Source of the DNA: Salisapilia sapeloensis CBS 127946
Lineage: Eukaryota > Protista > Oomycota
Assembly: GCA_023334545.1 (NCBI GenBank)
Contig: JAADVB010000041.1
Span: forward strand, 1-64,000
Direction of reading: 5' to 3'
Length of the DNA stretch: 64,000 bases
Both the position numbers and the translations under genes were made by a program. Under the pieces are notes generated by a model. The model worked only from the letters and a program-made list of their open reading frames with translations. It was not told where the DNA came from and did not search any database. This document shows positions 50,362 through 64,000 of the stretch, one piece after another (the first letter of the stretch is position 1; each line of letters begins with the position of its first letter).

Positions 50362-50419
50362 AGTAACCAAAAAGCTACCAGAGGATCAAGCGCATTCAGT
50401 GCCTTCTCTTGAAGCTGAC

Positions 50420-53400
50420 ATGAGTACGCGTCGATCAGCTCGGTCTACACAGTCCGTGGCACCTGGCACGGGTGGCTCAGGACGTAGTAGTGCTTTGGAA
50501 GAAATTAAAAAGCTGCGTGCGAATGGCTCTCAACTGTCTGCGCTGGAGAGCTCGTCTCGCGTTGCATCTTACAAGCCAAGTGAAGATAGCCTCTTTAAAA
50601 CAGTCACGGAAGACGAGTATGAAGAGCTAGTACGCAATCGACGGTCGCAGCTCCCGTTTGTCGAGAATGATGACCATGGCATGGGCTACTTTGACGATGG
50701 CGAAGAGCAGTTCTTTGACTCGAATGACGAATACGATGATGAAGAAATGGTGGATCCGGATGAAGAAGACGGAAAAGGCAAGAAACGTGGTGCGGGTGCA
50801 CTTAGCAGCTCGTACATTCGTCGGGCAAAAAAGTTGCAACGAGCAAAACTTGGTACGAAAGGTGACCAGAAGATCACCAACATGTTCTTTACTTCGCAAA
50901 ATGGAAAGTCAAAAGGTGGCGCAAAAGCTGCTGCTGCAAAAGGCAAGAAGGATATCGATCTGGACAGTATGCTTAACGACTTGACCAGTAATCCGAACGA
51001 ATCGACCTTGTATTATGCGCCGACAACGTCCTACAGCGCGCCCTCAAAGCCCTCTACTACCTACACTCATACGGAAGAGATTGAAGACGAAGAAGACTGG
51101 CAGAACGAGATGAACCAGGACGATGACGTCGTTGTCGACGAAGATGAAGACATGGAACCGCTAGCCAGTCCAGCGACAGTAACAGACGAAGTGGAGATGG
51201 ATAAAGCCAATATCGATGCCGGCACACCTGAAAAGGTTGAACCTATTAAAGAAGAAGCCACTCCCAAGTTGTCGAAGCGAGCTCAGCTGCTGCGTCAGAA
51301 GGCGCACCAGACGCAATTAAAGACCTCCAAGCCGACAATCTCCCACACACAGCCGCCTGTCAAGACAGAAGCAGTCGACAAGGACTCAGCTCCGTACATG
51401 AGCCACGTTCCATCGAACGAAGTTTCAGAGTGGTGGAATCAAAGTAGCACCGACACTCTCGACGTCACAAGTTCGAAGCACCACGCCGAAATCTCGTCGG
51501 ATGCCGTACACTTATTCTGGATGGACGCTGTCGAAGTGCGTGATCGTCCTGGAAAGCTGTATTTAATCGGCAAGAAGCAAAAGGAGGACGGCTCGAACGA
51601 CCTTGAATCCTGCTGTGTCGTCGTGAATGAACTGCCTCGTGTCATGTACCTCGTTCCGAAGCAAAACTTGACCGACATGACGAAAGAAGAGCGTCAGGAA
51701 GCGTGGATGAGCATGCACACTGAAATCCGATCGTTACTCATCCCTTCCTGTATCACTGGGAAAGTGGATCAACAGCGTTTCCAGTCGAAACTCGTGCAAC
51801 GTGACTATGCGTTCGAAGAAAGCGACATTCCACGTGGTAAGAACTGGTATTTAAAAGTACAATACGCAGCCAAGTACCCTGCTCCGGCGTCTCACGTCGT
51901 GGAGAACGGTGGCAAGACGTTTTCTCGTATCTGCGGAGCTTTCACTCGTCCTCTTGAGAACTTTTTAATCAAGCGAAAGCTGCTCGGACCTGGTTGGATC
52001 TCGATCAAGAACGTCGCCAAGTGCAAAGAGTCGACTTCCTTTTGTACATCTGAGTTTGAGACGTTTGATCCGAGCCACGTAGAGCCGCTGCTTGGTCAGT
52101 CCGTGCAATCTCCTCCTCTCAAGGTCGCCAGTCTTAGTGTCAAGACCGTATGTAACCGTACAACTGGCAAGCATGAAGTCGTTGCTTTATCTGCTTTGAC
52201 CGAGAGCAATGTGAATCCGGACGGTAAAGGACACAAGGGAGGACGGAAGCTGTCTCACTTCACGTGCATCCGGCCTCTAGAGAATGGATTCCCTCAAGAG
52301 TACGTGAACAAGGCGATGGAAGACCCTCGCTTCAGTGGTCCAGGTGACAAGCTGCGTGTAGAACCGAATGAACGGGCGATGCTGTCCTACTTTCTCAATC
52401 GACTGCAGCGTGAAGATCCAGACGTGATTGTCGGTCATAATCTCCATAGCTACCTCTTGGATCTCATCGTGTCTCGTATCGATCATTATAAACTCGGAGG
52501 CCTCTGGTCCAAGATCACGCGTCTACGTCGTGGTCGACTCACGCCGTTGAACATGGGCGAAGGATGGAATGAATACCGTCTAGACGATCTCCTAAACGGA
52601 CGACTGCTGTGCGATACCTACGTGTCATCGAAAGAACTGCTTCCATCGCAAAGCGACTACTCGTTAACGTACTTGGTCCAGTCGCAACTTCACAAGACTC
52701 GTGTCGACGTTGAAATGACAGACCTTCCGCAGCTTCTAACATCAGGTGCAGATAACTTTGTCAAGCTCCTGCGGCACACACTTGACGACGGCATGTTCGT
52801 CTTGCAGCTCATGCACTCTCTAGAAGTACTTCCGCTTAGTAAGCAACTCGCCAACCTCTGTGGGTACCTCTGGCCACGTACGTTAGAAGGAAATAAGCGT
52901 TCGGAACGTATGGAGTTCCTCTTACTCCACGAATTCAGTCGAAAGGAACGCAAGTTCCTCATTCCAGACAAGCAACGTCCAAAGGAAAAGAGCAAAAAGA
53001 CTCGAAAGCGAGATCCGGCGTATGCTGGTGGTATGGTCTTTGCGCCTCAGAAAGGTCTGTACGACAATTACGTCGTCCTGCTCGACTTTATGAGTCTTTA
53101 CCCTTCGATCATCCGAGAGTACAACATTTGCTTCACGACCGTCGATCGGAAGCTCCAGTCGGAGGATGAAGAGGTAGAAGTACCGCCACTACCGTCATCT
53201 AACGCAGAGGCAGGCGTCCTCCCAGATGTCTTCAAGCGTCTACTAGAGTCTCGAAAGCAAGTAAAAGCACAGCTAAAGGTTGAGACGAAGAATAATAACG
53301 TCGAAGCAGCCCAGCGTCTCGACATTCGTCAGAAAGCGATTAAACTCACAGCCAACGCCTTGTACGGATGTCTCGGTCTCAAGCACTCGCGCTTCCATGC

Positions 53401-54941
53401 CAAACCGATTGCTGCGTTGATCACAGCCACTGGTCGACAGACGCTGCAGAGAGCAAAGGAAGTGGCAGAGCAAGAGTGCGGATATGACGTCGTCTACGGA
53501 GATACAGACTCGATCATGGTGGATACCAAGGCGCAGGACGTGGCTGAAGCACAACGTGTAGGTAACGAAGTCATGGCGCAGTGTAACAAGCACTTTAAGC
53601 TGCTGGAACTCGAGGTGGACTACCTCTTTAAGACTATTCTGCTGCTGAATAAGAAAAAGTATGCTGCGTTGGTGGTACAGGATGCATCCAATCCAGAGGA
53701 CGTCAAGTGCAAGAAGGACGTCAAGGGTCTCGATATGGTCCGTCGAGACTGGTGTCCGCTGTCAAAGCAAGCTGGGCATGACGTCCTAGATGTCATCCTC
53801 TCTGGAGCTGCACGAGACGACGTGGTAGACAAGATCCATGACTATCTAGAAGCTCTTGCCTCTCGCGTACGTACGGAAGAAACTGCTTTGGATGATTTTG
53901 TCATCACCAAGTCGCTGAACAAGGCGCCAGAGCAGTATCCTGACAGTCAACGTCAGCCGCATGTGCAAGTCGCCTTAGCTCTCAAGCAACAGGGTAAACC
54001 GATTGGAGCTGGCACACACATTTCCTACGTCATGTGCAAGCAGGAGGAAGGCGGATCTGGTCGGAAGGCGTATCATCCGGAAGAGGTGAAGCGATCCATG
54101 GGCAAGTTGGAATTGGATCTCGAGTGGTACCTCGAGTCTCAAGTGCATCCGCCAGTCAACCGTCTGTGCGCACATATCGATGGAACGAGTAGTGCCCAGC
54201 TAGCCCATTGCCTCGGTCTTGACACGAAGAAATTTTCGCATAATATGGAAGAGGAAGTGGAAAACGATGTCATCCCGAGTGTGCTCCAGGATGACTCGGA
54301 GAGATTCCAGAACTGCTCTCCTCTGCGTGTGACGTGTAGAAGGTGTCAGGAAGAGAATGTCTTCCCTGGTGTACTCGATCCCATTTCAAGCAAGAGCGGT
54401 ATGGTGTGTCCGAATGCATCTTGTGGCGCGAATCTCTGGGGGTATGATCAGGAAGGCATCAATGGTACACCTGGAGACGATTTACTGTCTCTCTTGTCGA
54501 ACAAGGTGCATCTGGGTGTACGAGAGATTACGAAAAAGTATTATCTAGGATGGACGCAGTGTCTCGACAGCACTTGTAAGTTGAGGACGCAAAAGCAGAG
54601 TCTGAGAGGAAAAGGGGACAGATGCGCGGATCCACGATGTCGGTCGCAAGTGTCGCTGGAAGTACCAGATGAAGTCGTGTACACCCAGCTCAAGTACTTT
54701 GCGTCGTTGTTTGACGTCGAGAGAGCGCAGAGCAAGCTTGAGGAGAAGGGAAAACCGAGGGTCAATGTGGATGCGAGACACGCCGAGATCTTCCATGTAC
54801 TACATAAGCAGGCGGAAAAGGTATTTTATTATGCAGTGTATAGTAGGAGAGGAGATGCTAATGAGGTTGATGATGTAGACGGTGCGCCAGAACGACTTTA
54901 ATTGGGTCAAGCCATCTATTTGGCAATCGCTCTTTGTCTAG
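50420..54941 (+). CDS. POLA1: DNA polymerase alpha catalytic subunit, 2 exons
   Basis: DGMGYFDDGEE, LFWMDA, DPDVIVGHN, LLDFMSLYPSII, YGDTDS, C-terminal Cys4 zinc modules. Intron 54821-54878 gives the true end TVRQNDFNWVKPSIWQSLFV*; the track ORF reads into this intron. Confidence 0.97.
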
Positions 54942-55366
54942 ATTGGACGATAGCCTCTATAATTGAAAAAGGGCTACTTGATGTGTCTACTTAGTGCTTA
55001 AAAGTTGTTGGAAAGGGTCATCAATGAACTGCACATATCTAGCCGTATCTAAATGCATCTTGCGATCACTATACTCATAGCAAAAGCTATCATACCCTCT
55101 TTATAAACCAAACCACGATTGTATTCGTTCGGCTAGGCTAATGGAATGTGTCAAGCTCAATAGATGGTTAGCTAGTACTCGTGCACTAAATCATTCTCTT
55201 CACCTGACCAACATTCCGCTCAACTTCTACGAAACTACGATGTTGAAGTTAGTGACATTATAATTAGAAGCGTGCCAAATGGTACACCCTACACAACATC
55301 AGCCAACCAACACACCAAGTAGCAATTGGCCTCGTCTAGACTCCTGTGCACTTGCCTACATCGGTC

Positions 55367-58300
55367 ATGTCGTCCACTTCTGCTGCAAATGCACCTCCGG
55401 CTGATACGTCAGACATGAACGCAGCTCAGTTGCGAAAGCATTTATCCAAGTACGCTTTACCCAGCGCCAATGAGCTCCAGCACCTCCAGTCGGCGGACCC
55501 GACGGCGTCCCATCGATCTTCTTTCTTTCGCATGCAGACGGAAGAGCTTCTTTCGCGTATGCAAGTGAAGCCGAGCAGTCAGAACTCGGAAGGATTGCAA
55601 AAGGTGCTCTTTCAGGTTAAAGACATGTTGCTCGATACGCCGGAAAACAGCCAAGTCACGTCGGAACTACTTGAGCACATGGCACTACCCATTCGCAACT
55701 TTATCAAGCGCAAGGAGATTGTTCTGTCATTTTCAAAACCGTCTCGAGTGGATGTGATTGGTAGCTTTATTCTTGGCACCATGGCTCACTCGAACTCGAA
55801 GAAAAGCGAAGCGTATGGTGACTTTACCATCGACTTGGCTGTCGAAATGCCATCCGAGTGCTTTTTACCAAAAGACTTTAGCAACTATCGATACTTTGAC
55901 AAGCGGAATCTATACGTTGGCGTCCTCCTCTCTCGCCTACAACAGGACAAAAGCGGTCTTTTCAGCGACGTCCAGTTGGCCGACTTCCAAGGAGACACTG
56001 GAAAACCGATTCTATCCGTAAAAGTTGCTCCGAAAATGCTCAAGAGCCTTGGTATCAAGTACCACAGCCTCGTGCTTCATGTACACCCTGTGATCTCGCC
56101 TGAAGACACATTCAAACTAGCTAAACTCGCTCCATCTCGCAACAACATTCGCCACGAAGCAACCATGAGCGAAAGTGAGATGCAAGCATGCAACACGCCT
56201 CTGTACAACACATCCATTCTAGAGGACATGATGTTGAAACGACACTCAAGAGAGCTCCACACTGCGTGCAGCAGTGACAACTTTAAGCAAGCGTGCGTCC
56301 TCCTTCGCATTTGGCTACGTCAGCGACAGTTTCACAAAGCGATGGACAGTCTCAACGGCTTCCACCTGTCCATGCTACTACTGTACCTCTTCGAGCAAGG
56401 ACGAGTGAATCAGCATACACCTCCTGATCAGATGTTTAAAGTATTGATGCAGTTCCTTGTGTCTCACGACATCCAGTCCACTCCTCTCATGTTCTCTCCA
56501 GCTGATGACGGTGTCGCGTTAACAGAGCAAGGCATCAGCGTCTTCCAAGAAGCTTTCGATACAGTCCTTCTCGACTCATCCGGTCGACTCAACTTGCTTG
56601 CAAGAGTCACGATGAACGCGTATAAGGAAGTACAGCATGCTGCGAAGGAATCTCTCGACTTGCTTCATCGCGGATCAAGTGAAGACTTCCAGGCTCTCTT
56701 CATTCAAAAGAGACCATTCTGGACGCGATTTGATGAATATTTTTGGTTCCCATCTCCTGTGGCAGTAGATGAGTCGGATGAAACGACGTACACCAAGGAA
56801 GAGAAACGTCAGATCAATGATCTTGGTCTCGAACGCTTCTGGCGACGTAAACTCGAGAGCCTCGTCACTCGAGCACTGACGGATCGAGTGCATCTAGTCT
56901 CCTCGTACTCTCAGAAGGCTGTTACTTGGAAAGGAAGCATGCCTGAATCACGACCTGTTGCCATCGGAGTGGTTATCAACAAGACCAATGCGTCACGTAT
57001 CGTTGACAAAGGTCCATCTGCAGATGATAAACAGGCCAGTAGAGAGTTCCAGGTGTTCTGGAAAGGCAAGTCGGAGCTACGTCGCTTCAAAGACGGAGCT
57101 ATCGTCGAGGCTGTTGTGTGGGAAGAAGTCACCTCCGAAACGAGACATCGTCTGCTAGAGCTGATCGTTCGCTATATCACAGCTGCCCACTGTCCTCAGT
57201 TGACGTCATCATCGCACATTAAAGGCTCCAACGCTCCTCTCCACGCACTCGTGGACCATTCTCTTCGTCAGGGAAACCAGTCTGGAAACCTAGAGTCCAG
57301 CATGACATCCGTCAACCACCTCTGGGTCGTCTTTAATCGCATCGCGAAACAAATCCGATCTCTCGAGACGCTACCTCTGTCCGTATCAGACGTTCAACCG
57401 GTACATCCTTGCTTCCGCTACACGAGTGTTATTCCTCCGACGCCCCATCCACTCGCGTACTCTAAAGGCGAGAAAAAGACTTCATCCGGATTGACGCACG
57501 CTACAACTGTATTGGAGCCATTGCAAGTCTTTGTCAAATTCGAACGATCTTCCTCCTGGCCGAGTGAAGCGAAAGCTTTGGAGCATGCTAAAATGGGTTT
57601 CTACGTCCACATGGCGCATGAGCTCGAACGCTCTTGCCACCTTCGATGTGAAGCGACAAAAGAGAGTGTAGACGTCTTCAGTGGAGGCTTTGCCTTCCGT
57701 CTTTCCATCACGAGTGATAACGAAGTGTCGGTCGTAAGTGGTCAGAAGAAACTGGATGTGCTCCAGTCCACAGCCTTCGTACGTGCCAAGCAGCGAATGC
57801 AGTATCTACCGCAGCACGCCAACGGTGTCCAGGCGTTGCACACCAAAAGCGGATCGTATGGTCCGACGGTGCGTTTACTCCAGAAATGGATCGCCACGAA
57901 CCACTTGTCCAACAGCTTTTCGCAACAAGTGCTCGAGCTCCTTGTGGCTCATGTCTTCACGACGTCTTCCCCACACTCCGTTCCGTCATCCATGATGTCT
58001 GGATTTATGCGCACTCTCAAGCTTATCTCAAGTCACGACTGGCAAACGATGCCACTGATCGCATCTCTAGATGACCCTGCGAGTGAAGACAAGAGCCGGG
58101 AGATGACAAAACGGTTTGAAGCATCCGCAACCAAACCTTCCACCCACCCAGCCATGTTCATCGCTGCTACCTATGAAGACATGGAGTGTCTATCTAGCTG
58201 GACACGCTCGAGTCCGTCGAGAGTTGTTGTCCAGCGCCTGCAGTCACTGGCGAAGATGACGTATGAAAAAGGCGTGGCGTGGTTGAGTGGAGGTCTCCCA

Positions 58301-58753
58301 GCGCATGGGTGGCACAAAGCCTTCCACCTATCGGCTCCAGCAGACTTTGACGTTGTTATCGATCTGCAGACGAATAAACTACCGAGTAAGACGATGAAGA
58401 CAGAAAAGAAGCAGGCGTTTAGTACCACCGTATACAGCAACATGCGCTCTTCGGATGTAGAGCTACTGCCTGGATTCGATCCTGTCCATCGTCTTGTGCA
58501 GGACATTGAGAGTCGATTCGGTAGCCTCTTACTAGTGTTTGTGGACGTGTTAGAGAAGGACCAGATCATGCTGCTGTGGAAACCACCGGCTTTCGTGCCG
58601 AAGAAGAGGAGGCCGTTGGAAGCGAATGGGATGCTTCCGCTAGATAGAGACAACAAGTTCGAGTCTGTGCCGAATGTGTTTGAGATTCTGTCCGAGATCA
58701 AGGGTATGGGCGACGGAATGATCGAACGCGTACAGGTCGCACCATTCGAGTGA
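55367..58753 (+). CDS. NOL6: Nucleolar protein 6 / Utp22 (Nrap family), single exon
   Basis: DVIGSFILGT, IDLAVEMP..KDFSNYRYFDKRNLY, FWKGKSELRRFKDGAIVEAVVW, DVFSGGFAFRL. Confidence 0.95.
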   Translation: MSSTSAANAPPADTSDMNAAQLRKHLSKYALPSANELQHLQSADPTASHRSSFFRMQTEELLSRMQVKPSSQNSEGLQKVLFQVKDMLLDTPENSQVTSELLEHMALPIRNFIKRKEIVLSFSKPSRVDVIGSFILGTMAHSNSKKSEAYGDFTIDLAVEMPSECFLPKDFSNYRYFDKRNLYVGVLLSRLQQDKSGLFSDVQLADFQGDTGKPILSVKVAPKMLKSLGIKYHSLVLHVHPVISPEDTFKLAKLAPSRNNIRHEATMSESEMQACNTPLYNTSILEDMMLKRHSRELHTACSSDNFKQACVLLRIWLRQRQFHKAMDSLNGFHLSMLLLYLFEQGRVNQHTPPDQMFKVLMQFLVSHDIQSTPLMFSPADDGVALTEQGISVFQEAFDTVLLDSSGRLNLLARVTMNAYKEVQHAAKESLDLLHRGSSEDFQALFIQKRPFWTRFDEYFWFPSPVAVDESDETTYTKEEKRQINDLGLERFWRRKLESLVTRALTDRVHLVSSYSQKAVTWKGSMPESRPVAIGVVINKTNASRIVDKGPSADDKQASREFQVFWKGKSELRRFKDGAIVEAVVWEEVTSETRHRLLELIVRYITAAHCPQLTSSSHIKGSNAPLHALVDHSLRQGNQSGNLESSMTSVNHLWVVFNRIAKQIRSLETLPLSVSDVQPVHPCFRYTSVIPPTPHPLAYSKGEKKTSSGLTHATTVLEPLQVFVKFERSSSWPSEAKALEHAKMGFYVHMAHELERSCHLRCEATKESVDVFSGGFAFRLSITSDNEVSVVSGQKKLDVLQSTAFVRAKQRMQYLPQHANGVQALHTKSGSYGPTVRLLQKWIATNHLSNSFSQQVLELLVAHVFTTSSPHSVPSSMMSGFMRTLKLISSHDWQTMPLIASLDDPASEDKSREMTKRFEASATKPSTHPAMFIAATYEDMECLSSWTRSSPSRVVVQRLQSLAKMTYEKGVAWLSGGLPAHGWHKAFHLSAPADFDVVIDLQTNKLPSKTMKTEKKQAFSTTVYSNMRSSDVELLPGFDPVHRLVQDIESRFGSLLLVFVDVLEKDQIMLLWKPPAFVPKKRRPLEANGMLPLDRDNKFESVPNVFEILSEIKGMGDGMIERVQVAPFE

Positions 58754-58813
58754 AGTATGCAAACGAGCTTATAGGGTCCAATAAAGAATCGTTGATTATG
58801 CAAAAGCTTCATT

Positions 58814-59512
58814 TCACTGGTTATCCACTTGTTCCGACGAAGCAGTCTGGAGCTCATCGTAGAGGAGAATGAGTTCTGGAAAGAGCTCTTGGAAGACTTT
58901 ATCTTGACAGTTGAAACGAAGCGAATCTTTCGCGTAGGCCCTTTTCTACATTATACAAGTGAGTGTGGATGCGTATGGCAAGTATATCTTTGCAAACCTC
59001 TTCAAGTGTTGTGGAAATGCTGCCAACCGTCTTGTGGTCTTCCAGCTACGATAATGCAACTGAACAATAAATGGCACCTGAATAAATAGAATTCGAGTAC
59101 CATGAACGAGTACAGGCCGATGAGAATAGAAATGGGAGACCAAGCAGGACTCCAGGACTCGGGGTGGTGGTCCGAGTTTGTCATGCAAATGCGTTTATTC
59201 ACCTCGAAACGCCCATTCGGTGTTATCATCATAATGCTCGGTGGTTTCCACGGATAGTCTGTTGGAAACGTGAGCTTCCCGTGGTAATACCCGCCTTCAT
59301 ATGGCGATCCACTTGTGCCTATGGGTCGTATTGAGCTTTTAGTAACGCAATCTTATGTCCATCAGCTTGACGTCTTGTATCCTACCGATGAGGACGTAGT
59401 GCCATACCAAGATATTCTCTTCCAACGGAGCGACGCACAAGTTATTCACAGGAGCCTTGAGGAAGCTCATAAACTCTTTTCGAAGTCTCTTCTTCGCGAA
59501 AGCGTCCGCCAT
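58814..59512 (-). CDS. Ubc6/UBE2J2-like E2, copy C (174 aa, no tail anchor), 4 exons
   Basis: Exons 59512-59386, 59318-59101, 59045-58998, 58945-58814: MADAFAKKRLRKEF..WHYVLIGTSGSPYEGGYYHGKL..GRFEVNKRICMTNSDHHPESWSPAWS..ELFPEL..SEQVDNQ*. Confidence 0.9.
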
Positions 59513-59728
59513 GGGGGGGAAGCAGGAAATGGCTTCACTCCGAAGCGGCTATGCAGAGGTCGGCCAAACCGGATGGTACTGGCACCACATATTAGTGTGG
59601 TACACATTACTATCGAGAAGTGGCTACGTATTGGTTTCCAATGTCCAAGCCGAGGATTCCAATGGTTCAGCAAAATTCACGATATATTGCCAGGATCTTA
59701 GAAATAACGAATAAAATGGAATGTCGGT

Positions 59729-60388
59729 TTAGCTCACATCTTCCTCTATCTCGGTGGACTCGTTGCTTTCATCGTCGGATAGTGGCTTTTCAACCAGTTC
59801 TGGAAATAGTTCGAGAAACCTTGGATCGTTACGGTTATAAGCTTTCGACATTGTCGCCAGCTCTTGTTTCTAGGAAATAGACAAGAGGTTATGATTAAAA
59901 GATGTAGGTGTGCTTAGAAGTGGGTACCTTAGCGTTTGATGTTCGGATACCTCCAGTTGTAATCTCGTTTGTCAGCTACATGTCCATTTGCATTTATAAA
60001 GATCAGTAGGCTAAATATGCAAGCAATTGTCCAATATCCAAACCATAAATTCGTAGATGGCATCAAGTATGGCACCAATAGTCCAATGTGGATTCCATAG
60101 TTCCGGGTGGAACGACGTTAGCGTGAGGCATATACTTTGACCGACTTTGAATCTTCCACTCGGAGTAAGCATGGAAACACTAGGCGGAGCCAGCGGATAG
60201 TTGTTTGGGAACATTAATTGGCCATGGTACTCACCACCAGCATACACCGTCAAAGGCTTTCCAAGAATCACAAAATGCCATTGCAGTATGTTGTCCTCAT
60301 TCGGCTTGACAACGATGTTTGAAATTGGGTTTCTCGAAAGTGCAATGTATTCTCGCTTCAGCCTTTTCGTAGCGACTGTAGATGCCAT
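59729..60388 (-). CDS. Ubc6/UBE2J2-like E2, copy B (177 aa, acidic tail, no tail anchor), 3 exons
   Basis: Exons 60388-60044, 59975-59928, 59869-59729: MASTVATKRLKREY..GRFKVGQSICLTLTSFHPELWNPHW..ELFPELVEKPLSDDESNESTEIEEDVS*. Confidence 0.9.
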
Positions 60389-60716
60389 GTTCTTAGGTTG
60401 ACTGGAAGCAGAAAAGTGGCTGCAAATTGCGTTCGATTTTATTCGATTCACAGGCGTACTTGATCGAGCGTGTGATGCAGCATAAAATAGCTGGCTAAAT
60501 ATCGATAATGGGCAAAATACTAAGAAACTGTCAAAGTCATGCACATAGACGATATACTAATTTACGTCACTATACGTCATGGTCCTTTTGTGGTACACTT
60601 TTATCTTGCTTTTTGTAGCAGACATTAAGCTCAAGGAATTGTACACTAAGACCAACGTCTTTCGCGTCGAGCTCCTCGCTCCTCTCTCTTCTCTTCTTGC
60701 GTCCACATAATCAATC

Positions 60717-61496
60717 ATGGCATCTACAATGGCAACAAAGCGTCTACAGAAGGAGCTAATTGCTCTTCAAAAGAAACCGATTGAAAACATTCAAGCAGTG
60801 CCGCTCGAATCCAACATTTTGGAATGGCACTACGTGGTCAAGGGAACGGAAGGTCCTCTTTGCTAGCAGTTTCACTACATAAAAGCTCCATTTAACCAAT
60901 TATGATGCAGGTACGCCCTACGCTGGGGGATACTACCACGGGTACCTCCGGTTTCCACCCGAGTACCCGATGAAGCCACCGTCAGTACTCATGGTGACGC
61001 CAAACGGTCGATTCAAGACGAACCAACGTATATGCCTTAGCGCAAGCGACTTCCACCCTGAAACTTGGAATCCAATGTGGTCTGTCTCTTCGATCATCAT
61101 CGGCCTTTATTCTTTCATGGTACTTGAGCAATCCTTATAGCGCTACTTGGTCATAAACTTACCTTGAGCTAGTTAGACAATCAGCAGACGTTGGGCAGTA
61201 TGAACACGTCCGACGCGCAGAAACGAAAGTATGCTGAGGCATCTTTGGAGTGGAACGTGAATAACGACCCGAAATTCTGCAAACTTTTCCCAGACCTTGT
61301 ACAGCTATACGAGGAACGCGTGGAAGAGGAGAAATTACGAGATCCGGATGGCCTGCAGAAGTCCAACTCGACCGGATCGAACGGACTAGAGGTGCAATCT
61401 ACCATTGACAAACTCGTGCGAGGCGAGTATCCCAACGTCGTGACCGGATTCTTAGTAGTTGCTCTCGTCATTCTCATTTACATTTCTGAATTTTAA
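60717..61496 (+). CDS. UBE2J2: Ubc6/UBE2J2 ER tail-anchored E2, copy A (222 aa), 3 exons
   Basis: Exons 60717-60852, 60911-61119, 61173-61496: [34 protein letters not shown]-terminal [21 protein letters not shown]. Confidence 0.93.
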
Positions 61497-61528
61497 TTTG
61501 TGCACGGACTCGAAAATAAAGCGGAGTT

Positions 61529-64000
61529 TTATTCATTTTGCAAGAATCGAGGTTCAAATCCGAATGTCTTACTATCTTGCTGGTCCTGGAAAGGTATCAT
61601 ACGAGCAAGTCGGTGCGTGAGTTGACTTGCTAGCGATCGAGTTGCCATCGCTTTCTCCACAAAAGCATCTAATGCCGTTCGTTCGTTTGCGTCCTTTAAT
61701 TCATCTTTTACGTTCAGCTTACTGAGCCACGACAATCGCTTTGTAAGCTCACCACTCTTCGCTTCTGGTTGGTCGCTCGACTTTAAATGAAGTAGCTCGT
61801 TTAGCTGGATCATCTGGTCGTTCAGACTTGACAGCTCAAATGTTGATTTTTCGTTGAAGAGATGGACGAGTGTCAACCCAGCGACGTAGACACCGTCCCC
61901 GTAGTAGAGAGAGATCTTGCTGTCATTTGTAATTACAAATTCGAGCACTGCCCAGAGTTGTCCGAAGAGTATGGTATGGGAAGAGTTAAAGCTGGAGAGA
62001 GACGAGTTCTCAAGTACTGATTGAATCGTTGAGAGTGCCTCTGGTACCAAGTCGGAAGCGCATGTAGGAAGAAATGAGTCGTACAGGAGTATCTGACTTT
62101 CCTATTAACAACTTTATCAGACAAGTAAGATACATAAGAATAGTTTGAATCTACCATCAAATCGTGAAGGAGGAAGAGAAATGTGAGAGTGTTTCCAAGC
62201 TCACGCAATGTTTGAAGTACATGCGTACGAAGCTCGGTGGACTTAAACACATCCTGATAGGTCTCTTGCATCTTTAAAAAGTCTACCCATAGATAGTGAA
62301 TAAAGTTCCTGGCATATTAAATTATGTAGATTACCTTGGTACTGGCTCTTGATAGTAGGCACTTGAAACGCCTTAATGGAGAAAGCAATGGACGGTAAGC
62401 TTTGTGCTAGATCTTGCTGGATCTAGTAGTACGTGTAAATACATCATATCCATTTATTAGCTGATAAGAATTGATCTTACTTTTGTCGTAATGTAGCATG
62501 TACAGTCTTTTACGAGAGCTTCTATGTCCGACGGTGAAAGCAGCTCTAAGATACTTGCTATATGATCCAGCCTATTTGGGTATCAGTATTGAATACAAAA
62601 GTTATCGAATAGGTCTTCATTAAACACAGATACATGCCTGAAATCCCCACGACCACTCTTGTTAATATACTCGCCAACTTTCCGCCATTGGTTACGTAAG
62701 CATCCTTCGTTTATGCCTTCAATTCCTCTGTTCATTGCCATCCTTTTCCTCATTGTACTCATGCGACGGTGATTAATCGGAAACTTGCCGATTTGACCAG
62801 GAAGAGTGCGTAATAAATATCGCTTGTGCTTCCACTCGATAGCAAAGTTTGGAAACAAGTCCGTGAGGAGGCTTTGCACTACAATTGTTTTAATGTACGT
62901 TGTTTTATCATACCAAACGCTATCGTTTGGCGAAGTATCCTGAGATAGCTTATGATCGGCTAAAAACCGGTTGTACATTGTGTAAAACGAATCAAAATTT
63001 AGCATCGGTAGCCCTCTTTCGATCGCAGAAAGCGTTTGAGATATGACTTTACGCTGCTTTATAGCAGCAACAAAGTATGTTGAATCACTCGAAGCAGTCT
63101 TCTTTAGCCAAGCGGTCATATCCGTATGCAGTTTGTGCATAAAGTATTCGGCTACCTTGTCTGGGATGTACGACTTATCATGAAATGGACCAAATGTCAG
63201 CTTTGTAATCATCTTCTTTAGCCTTTCAAGCGATGGAGGTTGTACAGACATTGTATGTCCCTGTATATTCTTTTCTCGGTTGGATTGTTCAGATGCATTA
63301 AGAACACGGGTTAAAGATGATAAGAGGCTTCCGTTAGAGTCGAGACTCTTCTTTCCGCATTCGACTTTGTACCAGTAGTAAATGTCTTCCACAAGCTCAC
63401 TTAATGTATGACGCAGTGCGAAATCTGCTTCAGCTTGCACCTCATCCGCCAGGTATTTCACTTGAAACACTTCTAGTGATTGATGTAGCGCATCCAAATA
63501 GATACTGAAGACCGCAATAGGATCTTGAAAGTGGTTAGTCTTTCGATGGACGGATAGCAAATTCCATGGGATGGAATGAACAAGTGAATAGCGGGAGGTT
63601 CGGGACTTTGTACTTTGATCGAGAGATTCTCGAAACCAAAGCATAGAGCAATCGCCGAGAGATTGAACACACTGATCAAACTGTAGCAAGTGGCTAAATG
63701 AAGTTACTTCACGACCAAACGATAGCAGAGGCTCGAGATCCGCTCTATGCAATATTGAGCTTATGCAGTATACGCACTATAAGTTTATTTTACGTACGTT
63801 GTTAGTTGCTCGGTAGAGAAAGATTTAAAGAAAGAGTTTGACTTGGCAGGCGTTTGTCGTATGACTGCGTCAATGAGCATCTGAATCATTTCTAGTTGGC
63901 AAATAGAAGGGCTGGCAGACCGATCTAGGATTTCTGGAAACACACGCCTCTTTCTTGCTTTCGTAAAGTCATCTACGACAAAGTTTGGGTCCTTCCAATC
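61529..64000 (-). CDS. CYFIP: Divergent CYFIP/Sra1/PIR121-like protein (WAVE complex scaffold family), 5' end outside the window, multi-exon
   Basis: Segments match recalled CYFIP motifs: SPSIWQLEMIQMLIDAV, LGDCSMLWFRE, IPWNLL, YLADEVQAEA, QTLRELGNTL, GQLWAVLEFV, YGDGVYVAGLTLVHL. Confidence 0.78.

Follow-up and report, generated by a model that had tools for sequence, protein, structure and literature searches.

Three J2-type E2 genes at one locus

The window analysed here is a stretch of 64,000 nucleotides from the oomycete Salisapilia sapeloensis CBS 127946 (contig JAADVB010000041.1 of GenBank assembly GCA_023334545.1, positions 1 to 64,000 of the forward strand). At 58814-61496 it carries three intact, intron-containing genes for ubiquitin-conjugating enzymes (E2s) of the J2 type (Ubc6/UBE2J2), which we call A, B and C. 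Our analysis shows that only A encodes a tail anchor, and that B and C are expressed, constrained members of an older clade of anchorless J2 genes.

Gene A (60717..61496, plus strand) encodes 222 amino acids in the exons 60717-60852, 60911-61119 and 61173-61496; it adjoins CYFIP and is the positional orthologue of the long oomycete copy. Gene B (59729..60388, minus strand) encodes 177 amino acids in the exons 60388-60044, 59975-59928 and 59869-59729, and gene C (58814..59512, minus strand) encodes 174 amino acids in the exons 59512-59386, 59318-59101, 59045-58998 and 58945-58814. All seven introns of the three genes are of the GT..AG type, and in each gene 345 nt, exactly 115 codons, precede a phase-0 intron placed after the codons for ..FM. 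A and B diverge from an intergenic region of 328 bp measured from ATG to ATG (60389..60716), while C lies behind B on the minus strand, separated from it by a spacer of 216 bp (59513..59728) in which the 3' untranslated region (UTR) of B extends to about 59662 and the 5'UTR of C starts at about 59605. A first-pass annotation of this sequence had already described three E2s in 2.7 kb, each with 115 codons before a shared intron after FM, and a 328-bp region between A and B; the gene models and the spliced transcript contigs agree with the former, and the distance between the two start codons with the latter.

Homology searches were run exon by exon, and the spliced coding sequences were used for local alignments, trees and counts. 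Every exon of A, B and C large enough to score matched Pfam UQ_con (5e-18 for B), and the named database matches of the E2 exons in the window were Ubc6/UBE2J2. For exon 1 of B, the scores were 5e-38 for UBE2J2 (2f4w) and 8e-38 for Ubc6 (9en5), against about 1e-12 for the next E2 families. This exon aligns to UBE2J2 and Ubc6 without gaps over residues 1-115, so that the residue numbers of A, B and C are those of Ubc6. As a set, the window E2s align to yeast Ubc6 and human UBE2J2 (9EN5, 2F4W) without a gap from residue 1 to 131, and their Cys87 is in register with that of both enzymes.

All three proteins share with Ubc6 and UBE2J2 the GRF motif, which replaces the HPN loop at residues 78-80, a loop insertion of three residues that includes His94, and a Thr-flap that has the J2 length and contains Thr121. 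The segment Cys87..His94-Pro95 is ungapped against Ubc6 in each of them, that is, the loop insertion has a fixed length with the His at C+7, and the flap (..QQTLGS in A, ..EITTGG in B, ..HKTVGS in C) has the six residues between FM and xG[SG] that are typical of J2. Two further features of the family are found in A but not in B or C: the Ser at C+2, which is Thr in both B and C, and the unstructured linker followed by a C-terminal transmembrane anchor. A has the whole architecture of Ubc6 and UBE2J2, including the tail anchor, and its Thr-Leu flap resembles that of UBE2J2.

The tail anchor of A comprises the hydrophobic residues 204-219 (61437..61484, plus strand), with the stop three residues further on. 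The mean Kyte-Doolittle hydropathy over 17 tail residues (KD17) is 2.78 for A, -0.18 for B and 0.55 for C; thus, A alone among the three genes has a hydrophobic tail. The last exons of B and C align with the last helix of the UBE2J2 crystal construct and are followed by 10-17 polar or acidic residues, which in B form the acidic tail ..SDDESNESTEIEEDVS. Compared to Ubc6 and UBE2J2, both proteins therefore lack the linker and the transmembrane segment and end at the last UBC helix. These data are in concordance with the first-pass annotation, which had described A as a canonical, tailed enzyme and B and C as lacking a transmembrane segment. Matches of the last exon of B to PPR proteins were dismissed as low-complexity noise.

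Some residues of B and C recall the J1 family (UBE2J1/Ubc6e). C has a His-His-Pro at C+6 to C+8, as do human and mouse UBE2J1 (CLSISGHHP; PMC11649903 supplement), and the WHF and RFKVG of B resemble EWHF and RFEVG of J1. However, J1 enzymes have seven flap residues between FM and xG[SG] instead of the six of B and C, neither the J1-type flap (..PTKGEGAIGS) nor the C-terminal ..DFCCEGCG region is matched by B or C, and the N terminus and the ..FNC.DK.F..LFPE helix of both are J2-like. No J1-type (HHP) loop was present among the best 150 hits of the exhaustive search with B. Membership of B in J1, suggested by its WHF, KVG and TSFHP states, is thus rejected on the length of the flap, on the C-terminal helix and on the best hits. 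Yeast Ubc7/UBE2G2, an E2 of another family that has a canonical HPN motif, an acidic loop and lysine chemistry, is related to the window E2s only through the UBC fold (E ~1e-10).

Transcripts and splicing

Transcription of the locus was assessed with assembled contigs from four public RNA runs, which represent three samples of one study. Between 58 and 68% of the sampled words of the stretch were present in the four runs, and all seven modelled introns (7/7) were removed from the contigs exactly as modelled. Since the contigs lack exactly these seven introns, and nothing maps to the bin between A and B, the runs are RNA. In three of them (X2-X4) each gene has its own contig, at ~58778-59605 for C, ~59662-60420 for B and ~60627-61543 for A. 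The B contigs reach 60406-60420 and the A contigs begin at 60627-60695, leaving about 200 bp between the two genes (roughly 60421-60626) without a transcript contig; depth was 0 over 60446-60542 in all four runs. The k-mer depth of the B and C contigs is within ~1.4-fold of that of A, although such depths are a poor measure of expression.

In the contigs of B and C the stop codon lies inside the unspliced last exon, and the contig ends 35-67 nt past the stop. The fourth run (X1) yielded one contig of 3148 nt that comprises the 3' end of the convergent gene Nrap together with C and B, with the introns removed and the spacers unspliced; record 1 of this run is continuous over 59385-59869, straight through the B-to-C spacer. 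No splice joint from B or C to any further exon was found in the contigs of the four runs. A downstream transmembrane exon finds no support, as the contigs end 35-67 nt after the stops and the one longer contig is unspliced there, although contigs may miss rare isoforms. The inspection of transcript ends that the first-pass annotation had proposed therefore gives the result it anticipated, and both genes, whose expression it had presupposed, are transcribed and correctly spliced.

A membrane attachment might still be concealed in B and C, either through a hydrophobic exon joined in a rare splice form or through a lipid anchor. Contigs drop rare variants, and CVIM or GCC forms the C terminus of some anchorless J2-like proteins elsewhere. 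Nevertheless, four runs place the stop in an unspliced last exon and the longer contig runs unspliced into the neighbouring gene, there is no Cys near the C terminus of B (..EEDVS) or C (..QVDNQ) nor an N-terminal extension in either, and the orthologous short copies of 18 species, described below, end likewise. We regard a hidden anchor as very improbable.

The stops of Nrap and C are convergent and 60 bp apart, so that the 3'UTRs of these two genes must overlap. In addition, B may read through into C, because only ~57 nt separate the B 3' ends from the C 5' ends. The longest C 5'UTR contig includes an upstream open reading frame (ORF) of 13 codons plus stop (59550-59591, minus strand), and shorter contigs start downstream of it.

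The loop at the active site and the Thr-flap

The active-site loop, residues 87-95, reads CLSASDFHP in A (61033..61059, plus strand), with Cys87, Ser89 and His94; CLTLTSFHP in B (60104..60130, minus strand); and CMTNSDHHP in C (59161..59187, minus strand), with Thr89, His93 and His94. The Thr-flap of B, LTNEITTGG at residues 116-124 (59949..59975, minus strand), has Glu119, Thr121 and Thr122, the same as yeast Ubc6, and that of C, LEDHKTVGS (59019..59045, minus strand), retains Thr121 next to Val122. The first-pass annotation had read both remodelled loops correctly, with the catalytic Cys and the His retained and Thr at C+2, and the roles it gave for Ser89 and His94 of Ubc6 are those described in the literature. 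The J2 signature residues were defined in a study of Ubc6 as Ser89, which contacts the ubiquitin tail, His94, the GRF motif, Glu119 and Thr121/122 (PMC11649903). At the corresponding and neighbouring positions A has Arg85, Cys87, Ser89, Ser91, Asp92, Phe93, His94, Gln119, Thr121 and Leu122; B has Ser85, Cys87, Thr89, Thr91, Ser92, Phe93, His94, Glu119, Thr121 and Thr122; and C has Arg85, Cys87, Met88, Thr89, Asn90, Ser91, Asp92, His93, His94, His119, Thr121 and Val122. Compared to Ubc6, then, B and C share the replacement of Ser89 by Thr, B has also replaced Arg85, Ser91 and Asp92, and C has replaced Leu88, Met90 and Tyr/Phe93, the last by His.

Such changes stand out among oomycetes. The other oomycete J2 copies, short or long, have the loop CLSMSDFHP or differ from it at a single residue in 45 of 45 cases, and the 18 short copies all read CLSMSDFHP (one CLSISDFHP); only B and C deviate strongly. 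Across 329 J2 loops, Thr at C+2 occurs in about 12 (~4%), in full-length proteins of 214-319 aa, and every single substitution of the B loop occurs naturally in other J2 enzymes.

The flap separates short from long copies at residue 122. Thr121-Thr122-Gly is present in all 18 anchorless oomycete copies and in none of the 27 anchored ones; these 27 and the five outgroups (5/5) have Thr-Leu/Tyr-Gly. Within the window, these residues are TTG in B and TVG in C. In the flap, it is Thr122 and Glu119 that distinguish the more promiscuous Ubc6 from the Ser-selective UBE2J2, and the mutation T122A impairs RING-stimulated discharge onto serine in Ubc6 (PMC11649903). This split is the best hint at the sequence level that the anchorless lineage may differ in chemistry as well as in location.

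The remodelled loops could also indicate that B, C or both are catalytically weakened regulators, which would bind the ubiquitin-activating enzyme (E1), a RING ligase or ubiquitin and thereby modulate A or the pathway, while being poor at ubiquitin transfer themselves. A loop that is near-invariant in 45 of 45 other oomycete copies has been rewritten in B and C only; Ser89 is essential in both Ubc6 and UBE2J2, as shown by S89A and S96A (PMC11649903); B is without the Arg85/Asp92 pair and C without the aromatic residue 93; and the branches of both genes are very long (see below). On the other hand, Cys87, His94, Pro95, GRF and Thr121 have been retained despite saturated synonymous sites, although nothing would hold them in place in a protein without catalytic function. 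The Thr keeps a hydroxyl at position 89, and each single substitution of the B loop is natural in other J2 enzymes. A regulatory role of this kind is, in our view, unlikely.

An anchorless J2 gene across oomycetes

Short J2-type proteins of other oomycetes first came up in the exon-by-exon searches, and their distribution was established by a search with the short copy of Pythium, of which the 120 best hits were examined. The results show that 18 oomycete species possess a J2 copy of 164-200 aa without a hydrophobic tail (KD17 <=1.1) in addition to an anchored copy; the long copies measure 208-236 aa and have a tail anchor with KD17 of 1.6-3.3. Two J2 copies each are found in Pythium, Globisporangium, Phytophthora, Lagenidium, Achlya, Thraustotheca and Aphanomyces. 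Examples of the short form are Poli38472_011620 of Pythium oligandrum, F441_18042 of Phytophthora nicotianae, a 175-aa E2 of P. infestans and a 180-aa E2 of Thraustotheca.

As in B and C, the short copies stop shortly beyond the ..LFP.LV helix and lack a hydrophobic tail, and they have introns after codons 115 and 131. The arrangement in the window differs from theirs in that there is one per genome elsewhere and two here, in the inverted orientation that B and C have with respect to A, and in the extra exon-1 intron of C. Albugo, Peronospora, Bremia and Plasmopara contributed no short copy to the 120 best hits, and only the anchored copy was found within 10 kb in Albugo candida (L007:1-20806) and Bremia lactucae (L008:1-20739). 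Obligate biotrophs may perhaps have lost the anchorless gene.

In Pythium oligandrum and Phytophthora nicotianae the short and long copies are adjacent, with consecutive locus tags, in the order POLA1 - short - long - CYFIP. The window reads POLA1, Nrap, C, B, A, CYFIP; this is the same slot as in Pythium and Phytophthora, with orientations changed and Nrap inserted. CYFIP (FragX_IP), which lies downstream of A on the minus strand, is also the neighbour of the long copy in Pythium, Phytophthora and Thraustotheca, and POLA1 flanks the short copy in the peronosporalean loci that were read (Pythium, Lagenidium, Phytophthora). In Lagenidium, the short copy adjoins POLA1 and the anchored copy is not beside it. 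The anchorless copy of the Saprolegniales is intronless and resides at another conserved locus (6PF2K - RPL6e - E2), away from the anchored copy (L006:10001-10543, L011:6001-6522 and L010:6001-6645).

The annotated 194-aa model of the short copy in Lagenidium giganteum (P0044, L005:10001-10664) leaves in the intron that follows the 48-nt mini-exon and thereby gains about 23 spurious residues; its true product is probably ~170 aa.

The linkage to an anchored copy bears on whether B and C have left the degradation pathway of the endoplasmic reticulum (ER), ER-associated degradation (ERAD). Yeast Ubc7 is a soluble, UBC-only ERAD E2 that is brought to the ER by Cue1, and a missing anchor by itself does not place an E2 outside ERAD, because Ubc7 is soluble yet recruited. 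B, C or both might likewise be peripheral ERAD E2s, recruited by a membrane receptor or by a Doa10/Hrd1-type ligase, and form a second ERAD tier. In Pythium, Phytophthora and the window genome the gene has kept its linkage to the anchored copy of the ERAD type, the 328-bp divergent promoter region of A and B is compatible with co-regulation, and Ubc7-Cue1 is a precedent for a soluble ERAD E2 recruited by a receptor. Against this, the saprolegnian anchorless copies are unlinked to the anchored gene, a candidate receptor is not known, and the Ubc6 anchor contributes to recruitment by Doa10 (PMC7319771), a contribution that would be lost. We consider a peripheral ERAD function a possibility to be kept in mind, albeit on the unlikely side.

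Phylogeny, origin and introns

A maximum-likelihood tree built from 53 sequences places B and C within the peronosporalean anchorless clade, with support of 100/99. A single clade of A, B and C is rejected by the approximately unbiased (AU) test (p=0.015), while B and C as sisters are not (p=0.154). Shared derived residue states point the same way as the tree: RFEVN and NCQDK.F..LFP are found in C, and EITTGG and ..IGAIL in B, all states of the short copies, and A has RFKTN and QTLGS, which are states of the long ones. A recent duplication of A followed by two losses of the anchor is therefore ruled out by the tree, the AU test and the synteny. The first-pass annotation had proposed that two paralogues lost the ER anchor and remodelled the loop. 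Its second half stands, as the loop change is seen only here; its first half does not, as the loss of the anchor predates B and C according to the 18 species, the synteny and the tree. Judging from these comparisons, the anchor loss is old and happened once on this lineage, and the duplication and the loop changes are new events here.

The saprolegnian anchorless copies group with the saprolegnian anchored copies (97/97), and the AU test does not reject one common origin for every anchorless copy (p=0.176). The saprolegnian gene may have arisen in a second, independent origin with a convergent Leu122Thr, or its position may reflect gene conversion.

All peronosporalean copies have the intron after codon 115. 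That after codon 131, which closes a 48-nt mini-exon, was first considered as a marker of the anchorless clade and ruled out, since it is also present in the long copies of Pythium and Albugo; it follows that this intron is ancestral to short and long copies and was lost in A, as it was in the long copies of Phytophthora and Bremia. The exon-1 introns of A (after nt 136; 60853-60910) and of C (after nt 127; 59319-59385), both of phase 1, are offset by 9 nt in the alignment. Neither B nor any of the eight other oomycete J2 genes modelled (8/8) has them, and they look like lineage-specific gains, or one gain followed by a slide.

Selective constraint

The end branches of the tree measure 5.9 for B, 2.55 for C and 1.02 for A, compared to a median of 0.18. 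No relative of B closer than 57-59% identity was found (59% in a word-index search, 57% in an exhaustive search of cluster representatives) in protein collections of 5.8 and 1.84 billion entries, which do not include the proteins of the window itself. Constraint was judged by the proportions of nonsynonymous (pN) and synonymous (pS) differences, the codon-position pattern and a simulation of ORF survival, instead of the ratio dN/dS. In all comparisons with the window genes pS was 0.73-0.87, that is, saturated, and pN was 0.25-0.37. Between B and C, the differences at codon positions 1, 2 and 3 were 0.46, 0.34 and 0.64, in the order 3>1>2. Simulated neutral copies kept the frame open in <=0.3% of cases at >=0.5 substitutions per site.

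Saturated pS against pN, the codon positions, and the intact ORFs and splice sites exclude neutral decay of B and C, which the first-pass annotation had listed as counter-evidence to its reading. Thus, both genes are under purifying selection, yet they evolve several-fold faster than their relatives, the active-site loop included. One might see them instead as duplicates in decay, transcribed but on their way to becoming pseudogenes and without a selected function. This view would draw on their branches, the longest in the tree, on the failure to find a close orthologue in 5.8 or 1.84 billion proteins, and on Albugo and Bremia, where the anchored copy had no anchorless one close to it, so that the latter may be dispensable. 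It is hardly compatible with two intact ORFs whose five GT..AG introns (5/5) are accurately used, with pN far below a saturated pS and codon positions ordered 3>1>2, with the rarity of neutral copies that keep their frame in the simulation, or with contigs of B and C about as deep as those of A. The chance that it is correct appears to us negligible.

A proposed role for B and C

The J2-family E2s are the best understood enzymes that place ubiquitin on serine and threonine, and all described members are tail-anchored ERAD enzymes (PMC11649903). The explanation that fits our observations best is that A is the ordinary tail-anchored Ubc6/UBE2J2 orthologue of this oomycete, and that B and C are tandem descendants of a second, anchorless J2 gene present in both major oomycete lineages. 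As bare UBC domains, B and C are predicted to be soluble, either free in the cytosol or nucleus or held peripherally by a partner. They would accept ubiquitin as a thioester and pass it on with a J2-type reactivity that can reach hydroxyl groups, and the changes in their loops would alter this reactivity or the choice of partner. Catalytic competence is expected because Cys87, the loop insertion with the general base His94, GRF, Thr121 and a hydroxyl at position 89 are retained. As B and C are without the anchor element that recruits Ubc6 to Doa10, they must use other ligases or a peripheral receptor. We put the probability of this explanation as a whole, in which A is an anchored orthologue and B and C are duplicated, selected, J2-reactive anchorless enzymes off the membrane or peripherally recruited to it, at about 0.6.

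Several points weigh against it. In B, both partners of the Arg85-Asp92 salt bridge are replaced (Ser85, Ser92) while the Ubc6-like flap is complete, and in C the aromatic lid at Tyr/Phe93 has become His, a state seen in 0 of 329 J2 loops. The mutation S89A abolishes Ubc6 activity (PMC11649903), and B and C carry Thr89. The branch length of B, 5.9, is as expected after relaxed constraint or a changed function. In a broader tree B joins long-branched metagenomic J2 sequences, still among the Pythium short copies, so that its exact place is unsure; we read this grouping as long-branch attraction. With saturated synonymous sites and no orthologue found in a sister species, dN/dS is not estimable. 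Finally, a single study supplies all of the RNA evidence, and contigs drop rare variants, which leaves room for rare splice forms of B or C.

That soluble J2 E2s form a 'non-ERAD, non-lysine' branch of ubiquitination, as the first-pass annotation put forward, is a hypothesis: the solubility of B and C in vivo and their hydroxyl chemistry are predicted here from their retained and missing elements, and any role outside ERAD is conjectural. A wider version of this idea is that anchorless J2 enzymes would constitute a conserved non-membrane branch in oomycetes which targets hydroxyls, carries the Thr-Thr flap of the promiscuous yeast Ubc6 as its signature, in contrast to the anchored copies with the Thr-Leu flap of the Ser-selective UBE2J2, and has perhaps two origins, and which in the present genome would have been split into two enzymes; their loops, with Thr89 in both, the lost Arg85-Asp92 bridge in B and the J1-like His93 in C, would confer distinct preferences for nucleophile or partner. 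We regard this wider version as speculative and, as it stands, doubtful.

Within the collection of papers searched, none mentions UBE2J2 together with Phytophthora, and none describes a natural anchorless Ubc6. Anchorless oomycete J2 models are already present in public annotations under generic names and are apparently unstudied. The J2 family and its chemistry are likewise known; as far as the compared sequences indicate, the duplicated and loop-remodelled anchorless pair is new and specific to the window genome among the oomycetes compared. If a conserved lineage of bare J2 domains does exist, this chemistry would also be used off the membrane or through a different mode of recruitment. B and C are natural variants at positions targeted by mutagenesis of Ubc6 (residues 85, 89, 92, 93 and 122), and since they are predicted to be soluble, they should express easily and be convenient for structure-reactivity work. 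In oomycetes, which include many crop pathogens, the anchorless J2 represents a widely conserved and apparently unstudied ubiquitin enzyme.

Related sequences and neighbouring genes

Anchorless J2-like proteins are also seen outside oomycetes (P0012, P0170, P0005-P0007 and P0073), and four Kickxellales fungi have versions of 155-156 aa. The C-terminal CVIM or GCC of some of these non-oomycete proteins may be lipid anchors that replace the transmembrane segment.

Three proteins of 674-739 aa (P0200, P0201 and P0202, the first on a 1.7 Mb ENA contig) contain two J2-type UBC domains each, and they are top-scoring for B because both domains match. Their loops are without His94 (CFSLSDFYP) or without Ser89 (CFALSDFHP, CFELSDFHP). 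Metagenomic look-alikes of A and B (P0001, P0002) and of C (P0063) were set aside, as they lie on tiny contigs or share no synteny with the window; P0063 has YPWKPPSIMM and ESWS in common with C.

On the side of the E2 cluster opposite to CYFIP, POLA1 (50399..54901, plus strand) encodes the catalytic subunit of DNA polymerase alpha, with the Pfam domains DNA_pol_alpha_N, DNA_pol_B_exo1, DNA_pol_B and zf-DNA_Pol. This gene (1500 aa) and Nrap/Nol6 (1135 aa), which together occupy 50399-58753, are single uninterrupted ORFs, and the small E2 genes next to them have two to three introns each.

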